Made by a program: the position numbers and the translations under genes
Notes under the pieces: model-generated
The model's input: only the letters and a program-made list of their open reading frames with translations
Told to the model about the DNA's origin: nothing
The model's database searches: none
In this document: piece after piece, positions 18,672-24,600 of the stretch
How positions within the stretch are numbered: position 1 is the first letter of the stretch
How the letters are laid out: every line of letters starts with the position of its first letter
Assembly (NCBI GenBank): GCA_030704615.1
Contig: CM060732.1
Location: forward strand, 11,036,001-11,100,000
DNA: 64,000 bases
DNA from: Takakia lepidozioides
Taxonomy: Eukaryota > Plantae > Bryophyta
Reading direction: 5' to 3'

Positions 18672-21600
18672 ATGGGGGCATGCTGCTCAGACACAGCTGG
18701 AGGGCAACAAGCTGCTGGTGGTATACGTAGCAATGGGGACATGGATTCACAGGGTGATGTTATTGAGACTGTGGGATTGCTTGGGGGCGCACATGGCTTA
18801 ACCTCTCAAATACAGGTGCATTTCTTGTGGATTAGTTAGTCTTAGCAGTTTTCTTTCAGAGAGTGCCTACTATATGTGCAACATCACTTGAGACTACTAT
18901 CTTTTGACACAGATTTACTTCCTATATGTGTCATAGGGAAGTTGGTGCAAAGCAAAAATACAAGACATTGCTGGTACGCAAGTGTTAGGAAGCAAACAAC
19001 TCCTAATAGGCTGTCAAGGATATGCAATAATCCTTAGGCTGTTTATTCAACCTTAGAATTTCTCATCATATTGTCCTATAATTTTGGTGTTTTTGTATTG
19101 CGGCAGTTATCAATCTCAGCCAGCAAGTTGAGAAATAAAGATCTCTTGTCAAAGGTATTTCTTACATCTCTTTTGTTGCTTCAACCTGTAGCGTGGTGCC
19201 TACTGTGGCTGACTTTGAACTATGTTAGTGATTTGTTAATTGGTCTCCCTTGTGAATTTTTTCTGCCATCCATAGGGGTTGATGAAAATGGATTAAGAAT
19301 ATTGAACAAATGGCGACAAATGCATTCATTCTCCCATATCTTTATTGGTGCAGAGTGATCCAATGCTAGTGTGCTATGCCAAGAAACGAAATGAGGCAAC
19401 TGAAGAAGTGGGGCGCACAGAAGTCATACTGAATACATTGAACCCAGTCTGGGTAAGGGAGCTGAGATTAGACTACAACTTTGAGGAGGTTCAGCCACTC
19501 TTGTGAGTCCCTTCACCGTCCCGTTTGGGGCTGAACCCTCAACATCACTTCTATGCTGGGAGGGTCAAGGGATGTGAAAGTGCTTGACAACTAATATATA
19601 ACATTATGCAACTTGTAACTGGCTTTCCATTGATAACTGGGTGCCACAGATTTAAACTAGATCTGGTATTTACTTTCTATCTCTGCTTATTTTGTATCCT
19701 CTTGGTTGGCGTTCTTCACAAATTCAGCGTACTTTTGTGGTTCCTCACTTTTTGTCTAAGTTCCTTACATTCCTAGGAACAAATTCTGTCATGGAAGTCA
19801 TTGTTGCTTTATGCCTGGAAGTTATGGTTGAACTTTTTCTGAGGTGCATCAGGATCTAGGTAGCATTGTAGGTTGAAAGGGGCAGCTGGGGTATGTTTCA
19901 GTGCTGTACCTGGAGTCGTGGACATGGTTCCTATGCTTAAGATGGTCAGATAGGTCAAGGTGTATTTGTCCTCACCATGATTGCCTTCATAGGATAAGTC
20001 TTTGGGGTTGGACTTCAACATGGATACCACATTAATGGCTGTGGTGCTCTCTGGTTCTCAGGCTTAAGGTCTATGATGTGGACACAACTTTCCATGGTGT
20101 TTCCACTGAGGTACAATTTCTAACTGGAACCAATCACAGACGATCCAAATCATTGTTGGTGAAATCTATGAGTGGTGGCCACCTGTATAAAAGTTAGAGA
20201 GTCATGTAGAAGAGTCAAGTAATGTCCAAGATTATCTCGTTGCTTGTGATTATTAACTATATGATAGTCTAATCTATGTGCAGAACCTTCAACTACAAGA
20301 GCAGGACTTTCTTGGACAGATGGAATGCACACTATCAGAGGTATTTGGTAATGTTGGGAAGGTTGATGGGTCTCTACACATTGCGAAAGACAATCTCAAT
20401 CAGTTGTGATCAAAGTCGTCCAAGCTGAGTTGTCTTGATACTGTGATAGTAGTCTGAAATGGGTTCTCTGGGATATGGAGCAGATAGTGACAGCACCCAA
20501 CCAGGCGATAACTAGGGCACTGAAAGGGCACAAGGAGCCCACGCGTGTACATGACTGGGGTTTCCTAACCATTCATGCTGAAGAGATGGTGAAGTCAAAG
20601 TCTCTGGTAGAGATGGTGATCCGCTGCACAGAGTTGGACAACAAGGATCTTTTCTCAAAGAGTGTACGTGATTTCTGTCCATTGGAATATCACATATCCT
20701 CAGGTTCAGTTCTCTTGCAGACTCTGTCATGGCATGTTGGCACGTTACGCTGAGGTTGCAAGTTAAAGAAGGTCTTTCTCCATCATATTACTTCTGTCTA
20801 GGTTTTTTTTAGGGATTTCTAGAGGATATCTGGAAAACTCGGATCAATTGTCTGTTCCAAGGTAAGTCATACTACCAGCGTCAGCCCCTAACAAAGGTAG
20901 TTTCTGTCCCTCTGTGTTCCGCTCAAACTTGGTGCCGGGTCCATTGCCACAAGGCTATGGCAAACAGCGTCTTATGAGTTCATTCTGTCTAGGTTTTTCC
21001 CACATCACCACCCTCGATCCTTCATAAGTCTTCGAGTGCAAAGCTCATAGAAAGGCTAACAGCTCGATAGTCTCCCTAGTGGGTATGAATTATGGCCCAA
21101 AGTAATCATTCTTGTCATGTTGTTGGAGAATGGGAGTGTTCATGAGCAGAATGAGGCTGTATGCTTGGCAGTATGACTGAAAGAGAAGGCACGGGATGTA
21201 TGTATACTTAATATAGTCCCTCCATGTATATCTCGCGTGCAGGATCCTTTTTTGAGAATATCAAGACTCCGGGAGGACGGGAATGCAATACCTGTCTACA
21301 AGACAGAAGTGAAAATGAACAACCTCAACCCTACTTGGAAACCCATTCAAATCAACTTACAACAACTCTGTAATGGAGATATGGTAAAGGCTAGAACTGT
21401 CATGCATACTTTTTGCACATGGCATGCCAAAAAAAGGTTCAAGGACCTCTGAGGCCTTTGTTGACCTTGTTTTTGAACTGATGAAGAATTCTAGGATGCT
21501 GCTAATGCTGTGTTTCTACTGGTCAGGAGCGGCCCCTTGTGTGGGAGTGCTTTGACTATAGCAGCGATGGCAAGCATAACCTCGTGGGGTAAGCTACGAG

Positions 21601-24600
21601 AGTCCTGCTCATACATAATAGCTGAAATCAGTCGGGCATTATGGGGTGTTTTTCAGGACCGCCCTTTAAGGATTGAATGCTTCAATTTCAATAACAATGG
21701 CAGTCATGATCTCATTGGGTGAGCCTGCATGTCCTGTTCGCAGTCAGTTGTGGCCACTGAGTTTCTTGCTCCCTAACTTCAGTTCGGAGATGCTCAGTGA
21801 AAGGAGATGTAAGGGGACATCTTTGATCAGAGACCACTTTCAAAGTGGGAGATAATCATTTCAACTGTGGCTTCTGCTTGGGTGCCTGATCCAGTGATCT
21901 TAGGGTATTTTATTTGAAAGCTTACTTCTCCAGCCACTACAAGATCTGTTTGTCCGCGTTGAATGGCAGCAGTTGATCATCTAATTTGCCTCATGAAATA
22001 TCCGACATCTGGAGATTAATGTTTCTGTCTACGTGTTGCAGGTCCACGCAGGTGTCGCTCAATGAGCTGCTACTATTGGCAGAAAAACACAGATCGCAGG
22101 ACCTGATTCGACCGTCTAATAACCGCTACAATAAGCAACAGGCATTACCCAAGGTGTGAACGTTTTCTGTGGGTAACAAAGATTTTGCAGTTTTCATCTG
22201 AGGTGGTACTGGCAGGCTTGATTCAATATCTTGCGTTGTTTCTGTAGATACCTCTCAATCTTGTTTCTCTATCTGATAACAGACCTTCTATTTCCACTTC
22301 TACCAGATGTTCTCTGTACATGTCTGCAAAAAGCAATTTAGACATGTGCATGCAAGGGATAGACCCCTTGATTTATTCATTATTCATTTCATTCTTCTGT
22401 GAACAGGCTGGAGGGAAGCTTCATGTGGATAGTTGCACGATTACACCTTGCGACAGCTTCCTTGACTATGTCTTTGGTGGTTGTGAAATCAGCTTCTTTG
22501 TCGCTGTTGATTTCACTGGTGTGTCTTCAGTTAAAAGAGCCCATGACATTCCTTTACCTTTTCTAGTGTAACAGAGTGCTGCTGTCGCAAATGGTCTTTT
22601 GCAGAGCAATGTTGGGAAGAGCAGGAGTACAAGCAGAAGAAATTTGTAGTTTAGAGAGAAGATCCTCTGCTTTCAACTTGTAGTCGGAGGTGACAAAAGG
22701 CTTGTTAGAGCATATCAGTTGTAGCCCCCCCAAAAAGGGGAAAATGTCTATGTCATGAAATGAACAAGAAAGTTGACAAAACTGGACAAGACTCATGACC
22801 ATGTTTTAGGGTTGGGGTTACTTTTGCAGCATCGAATGGAAATCCTCTCAATCAGGATTCCCTGCATTATTTTGATCCATCAGGCCAGTCAAATGCCTAC
22901 CAAACTGTAAGCGCGCCTCAGACCTTTGCATATAGTTTTCTTCTTTGCGTCTGTTGTATGGGTATAACCTTAATCAGTGGCTTAAAAGGGGCCAATAATA
23001 GGCTTCTCACATTTCCACATATTCATCAAAAAGGTTAGGTGTTGGCTAAGTGTTGTGCTAATGTACCTGTGAGTATGGCAGGCTATTCGAGCAGTTGGTG
23101 AAGTTATACAATTCTATGACACCGACAAACGATTCCCATGTTGGGGTTTTGGAGGCCGCCCAATTGATGGTCCTGTCTCACACTGTTTCGCTCTCAATGG
23201 GAACCAATCTGATGCAGAGGTAACGATGAATATTGATGTTCTTGCATGCATTTTGTACCTTTGAGACTAGTGTAGTTACTGCACTTGTACTGGACTGTAA
23301 GTGCAGAAGTGTAGACATGTTACCAGGGTAGAAGGTTCAGTATGGAATGTGTCAGGCTGATTTTGTCCCATCCACTGCCCAGGTGGAGGGTGTTGAAGGC
23401 ATTCTGCGTGCCTATATGCAGGCTCTTCGCAATGTGTCTCTGGCAGGCCCTACCTTGTTCGCACCAGTTATCAACTTGGCGGCTTCTATGGCATCTCAAT
23501 TTGTGTCACAGGAGCCACAGAAATATTTTGTGCTGCTTATAATTACGGTGTGCACGTCGTTTTGCTTGCACTTACAGTTCACTCTCTAAAAAATTTCCTC
23601 TCTGTTTGGCTGTCTGTCTAAGTTGTAACCAAAGGATAAAGGTAGGTAGAGGAAACAGCATTCTCCACAAATGTCAGCTTTTTCTGGATGTGTTACCTCT
23701 TGGTCAATTTCTTATTACTAAAGTCCACTTTACCAGACTGGGTAATGACTTGTGTGCACATCCTCAACTACGTTGCTGTTAGGGATATGGTTTGGTTTGT
23801 TTGGAGGATAGAGTGAAGAGATTCCTAAACTTTCTGGGGCTCTAATATGGACAGCTGTTGTATATTTGCAGGATGGTGTTATTACAGATTTGCAGCAAAC
23901 AACATTGGCAATTGTAAATGCATCTGAACTTCCACTTTCGCTGCTAATAGTGGGCGTAGGTGGTGCTGACTTCACAGGGATGGAGGTTCGCCCTTTTCCT
24001 GTGATCTTTTTGGAAGGGTCACTTTGCATAGTTGAAGTCTAGGGGGTTGTTCAAGGATGAGTCGATCACTTTTTTGCCTACTTTCATCTGTGTCTATTTA
24101 ATTTCTTTCTCTTACACTATTTGTGCTCCTATTAGCTACAAGATGGCTGTTTTCCTCTACTTGCGTTATGTTGATTGTTGCAGTTTTGGACGAAATCTTG
24201 CAATGCACCTCTATCCTGAGTGCTGTGTGACGGGTTTACTCCTTGTGCTTTGGTGTGGTTAGATACTCGATGCTGATAAAAGGCGCTTGGCAACAGCAGA
24301 TGGACGACTCGCTATGCGAGACATTGTCCAGTTTGTGCCCATGCGGAATGTAACCAGTAAGTGTTCAGATCAACTGTATTGTGTATGAGAGAGCATGAGT
24401 TGATGTATGTGCCTCGGGCTGCTAGACATCCCTTCAGGACAAAGTCTAAGGGACTGATTTTATCAAAGGGCCTCAATCAACTTGGAAGTGGATGCGAACC
24501 TCTAAATATTGTGCAATCTTGGGGGTGGTGGTTGGGCAGATGGACCATCTCTAGCAAAAATGTTGCTGGCTGAGCTTCCAGGCCAGTTGCTGAATTTTAT

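Follow-up and report, generated by a model that had tools for sequence, protein, structure and literature searches.

A duplicated exon for loop 3 of the C2B domain probably provides alternative exons in a copine/BONZAI gene of the moss Takakia lepidozioides

The exons 2/3 of alpha-tropomyosin and IIIb/IIIc of FGFR2 are the classic two-exon clusters in which a short intron and nonsense-mediated decay keep the exons mutually exclusive. A pair that is probably of this kind is described here in a copine/BONZAI gene found in 64,000 nucleotides (nt) of Takakia lepidozioides DNA (assembly GCA_030704615.1, contig CM060732.1, positions 11,036,001 to 11,100,000 of the forward strand); this whole stretch is called the window, and its own numbering is used throughout. 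Criteria for exclusive exon clusters were set out by Pillmann et al. 2011 (PMC3228551), a human survey is available (Hatje et al. 2017, PMC5740500), substitutions of tandemly duplicated exons have been treated (PMC9741552), and exclusive exons arising by tandem duplication have been reported in plants too (PMC6071210). The Takakia exons, here called 8a and 8b, resemble such tandem pairs in being neighbouring internal exons of equal length, with the same phase and type of splice site, homologous to each other, coding for the same structural element and predicted to enter productive mRNA one at a time. They are unlike the pairs compared in belonging to a moss copine, in being apparently lineage-specific rather than ancient, and in the very unequal divergence of the two copies.

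Copines of the BONZAI type link calcium signals to membranes. In Arabidopsis they determine the basal level of cytosolic calcium and hold immunity in check (PMC12167975), and in several copines the C2B domain is held responsible for Ca2+-dependent membrane binding (PMC10968396). Arabidopsis BONZAI1/COPINE1 (BON1; structures 6KXK, 6KXU and 6KXT) has, like the predicted Takakia protein, an N-terminus of the myristoylation type, a C2A and a C2B domain and a vWA/Copine domain, with one exon-8-type segment (SPVIIECSDFNSNGKHSLIG) at the place homologous to the alternative exons. In BON1, as in every other plant copine sampled, this segment exists in one version only, unlike in the Takakia gene.

The available evidence makes it probable that a tandem duplication in the Takakia gene led to either-or use of 8a and 8b, and with it to two copines of 589 residues that differ in loop 3 of C2B. 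According to this proposal, a tandem duplication of approximately 130 nt, which included the exon for the strand-loop 3-strand element of C2B, would have created the alternative exons, and each fully translatable mRNA would carry exactly one of them. Transcripts with both exons, with neither or with the intervening intron retained would meet early stops and presumably undergo nonsense-mediated decay, while the binding of U1 at the 8a donor and of U2 at the 8b branch point, only approximately 30-37 nt apart, would lead to a steric clash within the 68-nt intron.

The anatomy of the pair (table 1) agrees with the preliminary description of the locus, which had placed two homologous exons with AG acceptor and GT donor sites on either side of a short intron at these coordinates. 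Both exons start in phase 0 and end after the second nucleotide of a Gly codon, with the boundaries cAG|G...GG|GTRAGC in either case; they are identical at 36 of 62 nucleotides and 10 of 21 residues (in-window tblastn, E = 1e-5), so that the encoded proteins differ at 11 of 21 residues. A search of the 64-kb window for a third copy of the exon found none. Either exon had been said to join in frame between CNGDM and G-STQVSL, and the frame to be broken by both or by neither: 8a alone and 8b alone each yield the open reading frame of 589 residues, whereas, because the exon length is not divisible by three, inclusion of both leads to a stop at codon 281 and omission of both to a stop at codon 264. 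If 8a, 8b and the intron between them are all kept, the stop falls at codon 278. Only the single inclusion of 8a or 8b encodes the vWA/Copine domain.

Table 1. Features of the copine/BONZAI gene and of the duplicated exon, in window coordinates.
Feature	Position	Strand	Remarks
Copine/BONZAI gene, coding part	18672..24667	+	16 coding exons, counting one of 8a/8b
Exon 7, constitutive	21243..21383	+	C2B core DPFLRISR...NLNPTW...CNGDM; loop-1 Asp of SDPF; RNA joint 20663>21243; phmmer matches to copines
Exon 8a, probable derived copy	21527..21588	+	62 nt; cAG before, GTAAGC after; presumed loop-3 ligand positions D/S/N
Intron between 8a and 8b	21589..21656	+	68 nt; retained form reads GGG TAA stop
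Intron motif after 8a	21589..21610	+	GTAAGC..GAGAGTCCTGCTC
Exon 8b, probable ancestral copy	21657..21718	+	62 nt; cAG before, GTGAGC after; presumed loop-3 ligand positions N/N/D
Intron motif after 8b	21719-21739	+	GTGAGCC..CATGTCCTGTTC
Exon 9, constitutive	22042..22153	+	completes Gly, then STQVSL; C2B end and linker to vWA/Copine domain

Transcript information was obtained from the assembled contigs, rather than the raw reads, of two public runs from two studies (X1 and X2). Both are labelled only as guessed RNA, and they were taken as RNA because their contigs skip every intron at GT..AG. The contigs match the window with zero or one difference, and the sequence of the flanking exons is common to both forms, as in an assembly bubble. 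In X2, a single short contig (depth 19.4) carries both 21383>21527 and 21588>22042, that is, exon 7 joined to 8a and 8a joined to exon 9; the joint of 8b with exon 9 (21718>22042) is present in X1 at a depth of 45 and in X2 at a depth of 8.3. The joint of exon 7 with 8b (21383>21657) is not displayed and was derived from the arithmetic of the X2 depths: the observed bin values of 18.9, 9.2, 5.27 and 24.3 compare with 18.7-19.2, 9.24, 5.37 and 24.31 if exon 7 is followed by 8b and then by exon 9, but they are not reproduced if the 8b contig is extended leftward into 8a or into the 68-nt intron. Thus, of the four junctions by which the predicted splice switch was to be checked, three are read directly in spliced contigs of the two runs, and the fourth follows from depth only. 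The depths of the 8a and 8b forms in X2 add up to 27.7 (19.4 + 8.3), against 28.9 for the upstream contig, which has its end in exon 7; nearly all X2 transcripts would therefore be accounted for by the two single-exon forms, with 8a the commoner. Contig depth is a rough measure, although a local one for these bubble contigs, which contain little beyond the alternative exon.

Among the joints listed for X1 and X2 none connects 8a with 8b. X1 offers a different picture of the region: its record 3 (1792 nt) runs unbroken over 21526-21717, so that it contains 8a, the 68-nt intron and 8b, and is then joined to exon 9 with all downstream introns removed. In the contigs of the two runs the 68-nt intron is found retained and never found removed. 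X1 also contains contigs of low depth (approx. 5) over or within two other introns (20311-20511 and 23989-24244), which may reflect intron retention or pre-mRNA, and the retained 8a-8b form of X1 may likewise be in part pre-mRNA.

As to the identity of the gene, the coding sequence starts with the ATG at 18672 and ends with the TGA at 24665-24667, and every intron has GT..AG ends. In the gene model the joints of the RNA contigs were shifted to GT..AG positions and the first two exons were taken from the DNA sequence, the exon chain from 19152 onward being backed by spliced RNA contigs. The predicted N-terminus, MGACCSD, corresponds in sequence to the plant BON-type MGxCxS myristoylation signal, as in BON1. 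The 589-residue frame is 70-72% identical to a Sphagnum copine (P0156) over residues 1-580, 64-65% identical to the Calypogeia protein, 60-62% to that of Marchantia and 53% to an Arabidopsis BON3 protein. P0156 contains two Pfam C2 matches (PF00168) and a Copine domain (PF07002), and it matches the Arabidopsis BON1 structures 6KXK/6KXU with E = 3e-178. On the strength of the full-length similarity to P0156, of the domains of the latter and of its match to BON1, the locus is identified as a complete copine/BONZAI gene with two C2 domains followed by a vWA-like Copine domain. The alternative exon falls within the second Pfam C2 match of P0156, and 6KXT, a 144-residue BON1 chain, matches the C2B region; exon 7 taken alone gives a Pfam C2 match of 18.2 bits (E = 0.003), under the curated cut-off of 22.

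The alternative exon encodes a strand, loop 3 and the next strand of C2B. In C2 domains the Ca2+ ligands of loop 3 form a D-x-D-x5-D pattern placed before a hydrophobic-I/V-G sequence, as with D230, D232 and D238 of Syt1, which lie just before I-I-G. The pattern common to 8a and 8b, C-F-[D/N]-x-[S/N]-x5-[N/D]-L-[V/I]-G, fits this motif in both spacing and flanks. The preliminary description held that the acidic ligands differ between the exons, and indeed all three loop-3 positions do, being D/S/N in 8a and N/N/D in 8b. The 8b combination is also that of Sphagnum, liverworts, Selaginella and ferns; streptophyte algae such as Chlorokybus have D/D/D, and the D/N/S of Arabidopsis BON1 matches neither Takakia isoform. 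The aspartates of loop 1 (in LD and SDPF) are encoded by constitutive exons, and 8a has a Trp where the family has Ile, Leu or Phe. As judged from the textbook C2 motif, the isoforms would differ in the placement of the acidic side chains of the Ca2+ site, and they are likely to differ in Ca2+ or lipid binding.

That 8a is not an idle copy is suggested by the pattern of its changes. A comparison of 8a with 8b gives a proportion of synonymous differences (pS) of 0.79, which is saturated, and one of non-synonymous differences (pN) of 0.32. Among 139 unique copine segments, eight positions (P3, L4, E7, C8, G15, H17, L19 and G21) are conserved in at least 88%, a conservation that is in part by construction, since some of these positions are restricted by the extraction pattern itself. 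All eight residues are present in 8a, whose differences from 8b are confined to other positions. In 200,000 simulations with 26 random substitutions placed on 8b, none kept all eight positions without acquiring a stop, and only 0.65% reached 10 identical residues. The conserved residues, the lower value of pN, the intact splice sites, the preserved length and the greater depth in X2 together argue for constraint on the fast-evolving 8a, and for its translation and selection over the greater part of its history.

The search for paired exons in other bryophytes, which the preliminary description had called for, returned one exon only in Sphagnum species, Calypogeia and Marchantia. The same two exons flank this single exon in Sphagnum compactum (L002), Calypogeia fissa (L003) and Marchantia polymorpha (L004), and likewise in a metagenome contig identical to Sphagnum (L001) and in five further metagenome loci (L005-L009); where they could be measured, the introns of these relatives are approximately 250-310 nt before and 110-260 nt after it. 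The homologous segment resembles 8b in every relative examined. That of Sphagnum, which reads DRPLKIECCNFN[TS]NGSHDLIG, agrees with 8b at 18 of 21 residues and with 8a at 9-10 of 21, and at the DNA level the Sphagnum exon is identical to 8b at 49-50 and to 8a at 33 of 62 nucleotides. From the resemblance of this single segment to 8b, the latter is probably the ancestral exon and 8a the derived copy. The pair itself is apparently lineage-specific, or else lost elsewhere, rather than common to the sampled bryophytes. Within the Sphagnum intron a stretch of 19 nt matches 8a at approximately the corresponding place; it was set aside as not significant (p 0.03-0.09 against shuffled sequences).

The extent of the duplicated unit can be estimated from the introns. 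The starts of 8a and 8b are 130 nt apart, and each exon is followed by an intron motif of the form GTRAGC...GTCCTG.TC, with 6-8 nt between GTRAGC and GTCCT, which is repeated in the window at a spacing of 129 nt and is also found after the single Sphagnum exon (GTAAGCCAGAAAGTCCTCT; L001 1573-1592 and L002 4468-4487). The motif, on the donor side, is common to 8a, 8b and the Sphagnum exon and is not present in the liverworts. Since it recurs at 129 nt and follows the Sphagnum exon, the duplicated unit of approximately 130 nt comprised the exon together with flanking intron. Such conservation of an intron motif is unusual at this depth, and it might be conjectured to mark a splicing element. The duplication may have followed the separation from Sphagnum, or it may have preceded it, with a subsequent loss in Sphagnum; the synonymous sites are saturated, and in the unresolved 21-column tree a clade of 8a and 8b is not rejected (p-AU 0.275, approximately unbiased test). 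In the same tree the 8a branch is approximately fivefold longer than the 8b branch.

Two further observations were made on the relatives. In L007 (1019-1330), a contig of "metagenome" origin, Sphagnum-like exons 7, 8 and 9 are joined without introns, which makes it transcript-derived or a processed copy and provides an instance of the single-exon form in Sphagnum. Liverworts, lycophytes, ferns and seed plants are all represented among the 120 best relatives of the Sphagnum copine, and mosses by Sphagnum only, with neither Physcomitrium nor Ceratodon among them; the large moss class Bryopsida may lack a BONZAI-type copine.

With regard to how exclusivity might be enforced, an intervening intron that is too short and the decay of frame-shifted products are the mechanisms described for two-exon clusters (PMC6071210). 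The Takakia pair is like those clusters in having two exons of a length not divisible by three and by far the shortest intron between them, with candidate branch points 30-37 nt from the donor, and in the presence among the RNA of a by-product that contains both exons and the retained intron. It is unlike them in that steric exclusion and decay are here inferred, and in that the intron is slightly longer than the approximately 60-nt minimum determined experimentally for angiosperm introns (PMC3371709). The intron is the shortest of the gene, all others (143-579 nt) being more than twice as long, and its candidate branch points, 30 and 37 nt from the 8a donor, are only close to the consensus. 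Competing RNA structures of the docking/selector type were sought and found no support, the fold of 21500-21760 having z = -0.63 against shuffled sequences and the inverted repeats being only short and scattered. Incompatibility of U2- and U12-type sites was discarded: the four splice sites all conform to GT-AG, and their donors (GTAAAG, GTAAGC and GTGAGC) are of the U2 type, without a U12 donor box. With these two mechanisms set aside, the reading frame with decay and the short intron remain. That the frame enforces exclusivity at the level of the full-length protein is certain in its logic, decay of the other products being presumed, and steric hindrance probably adds to it.

The RNA of X1 lends itself to another explanation, namely regulated unproductive splicing, in which recognition of both exons causes an unspliceable 68-nt intron to be kept, the resulting stop (codon 278) leads to decay, and control of dosage is the primary role of the pair, the choice between the 8a and 8b proteins being secondary. 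Record 3, in which 8a, the intron and 8b are joined to an exon 9 from whose downstream side all introns have been removed, is what such a scheme predicts. However, the productive forms of X2 add up to nearly the flanking depth, the low-depth X1 contigs over other introns indicate that the retained form may be pre-mRNA, and 8a keeps every fold-critical residue in spite of saturated synonymous sites, which a pure poison exon does not require; the explanation is unlikely. A lineage-specific duplicate in decay, spliced by accident or as noise while only the 8b protein matters, would account for the absence of 8a from all sampled relatives, for its long branch and for both the unusual Trp and the Ser and Asn at two ligand positions. 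Such an origin is hard to reconcile with intact splice sites, a length of exactly 62 nt, the lack of stops, the eight of eight conserved residues (none of 200,000 neutral simulations), a pN well below pS and a depth in X2 greater than that of 8b, and we regard it as quite improbable. For an artefact, either two gene copies or a mis-assembled tandem duplication taken for alternative splicing, no supporting point was found, the search for paralogues having covered the 64-kb window, where there is no other copy. With an identity of only 58% the two exons are not a collapsed or expanded repeat; both occupy a single locus, with the same exons on either side, and the RNA contigs match the window closely and have these exons in common, so that an artefact is very improbable.

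Alternative use of 8a and 8b is the preferred reading, and several points weigh against it. The RNA support consists of contigs from two runs, with the joint of exon 7 and 8b resting on arithmetic, and isoform ratios can be read from contig depth only poorly. The only form seen around the two exons in X1 retains the 68-nt intron, so that productive use of 8a or 8b is not directly shown there. An intron of 68 nt is above the angiosperm minimum, so that steric exclusion is no more than probable. No orthologue of 8a is present in the Sphagnum, Calypogeia and Marchantia loci L001-L009, and there is, as a consequence, no conservation across species to back a function of 8a. Finally, the three exon positions that we take to be Ca2+ ligands were mapped from the textbook motif and not by residue-level structural comparison. 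With respect to the criteria of Pillmann et al. 2011, the anatomical features (neighbouring internal exons, equal length, same frame, compatible sites and homology) are all found in the pair, and the transcript evidence comes from one run only (X2), where the joint of exon 7 with 8b is derived from depth.

A more far-reaching version of the preferred reading can be put forward tentatively, and is in our view rather doubtful as a whole. In it, a single-copy moss copine would have been neofunctionalised by splicing instead of gene duplication: 8a would swap the acidic positions of loop 3 and so provide different Ca2+ set-points for membrane binding, and exclusivity would be brought about by an intron too short to splice. 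Documentation of exclusivity by a too-short intron in plants was not encountered, no targeted literature search having been made, and among the top-ranked full-text results no paper contained both copine and mutually exclusive exons. With this pair, plants would offer a clear instance of a mode of splicing that is better known from animals. A natural pair of isoforms, distinguished solely by loop 3 of C2B, would represent a ready-made ligand-swap experiment on the tuning of Ca2+ and lipid binding, and the compactness of the locus (two exons, a 68-nt intron and exclusivity enforced by the frame) makes it a testable system, on which it could be seen if plant spliceosomes are subject to steric exclusion.

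Minor observations concern other parts of the gene. At three coding positions (20063, 22408 and 23460) the contigs of X1 and X2 depart from the genome sequence, always as C>T on the sense strand, with Leu115Phe, Ala315Val and one silent change as the effects; those at 20063 and 22408 moved the reported joints to ends other than GT/AG. They could be strain differences, assembly errors or the result of editing. An Rfam search over 18000-26000 gave no match. Within the intron between exons 6 and 7, approximately 175 nt (20811-20986) lie under many different RNA contigs, whose summed depths are in the thousands and which have varied loose ends and many base differences, as if a highly expressed repeat family had one of its members inside the intron.

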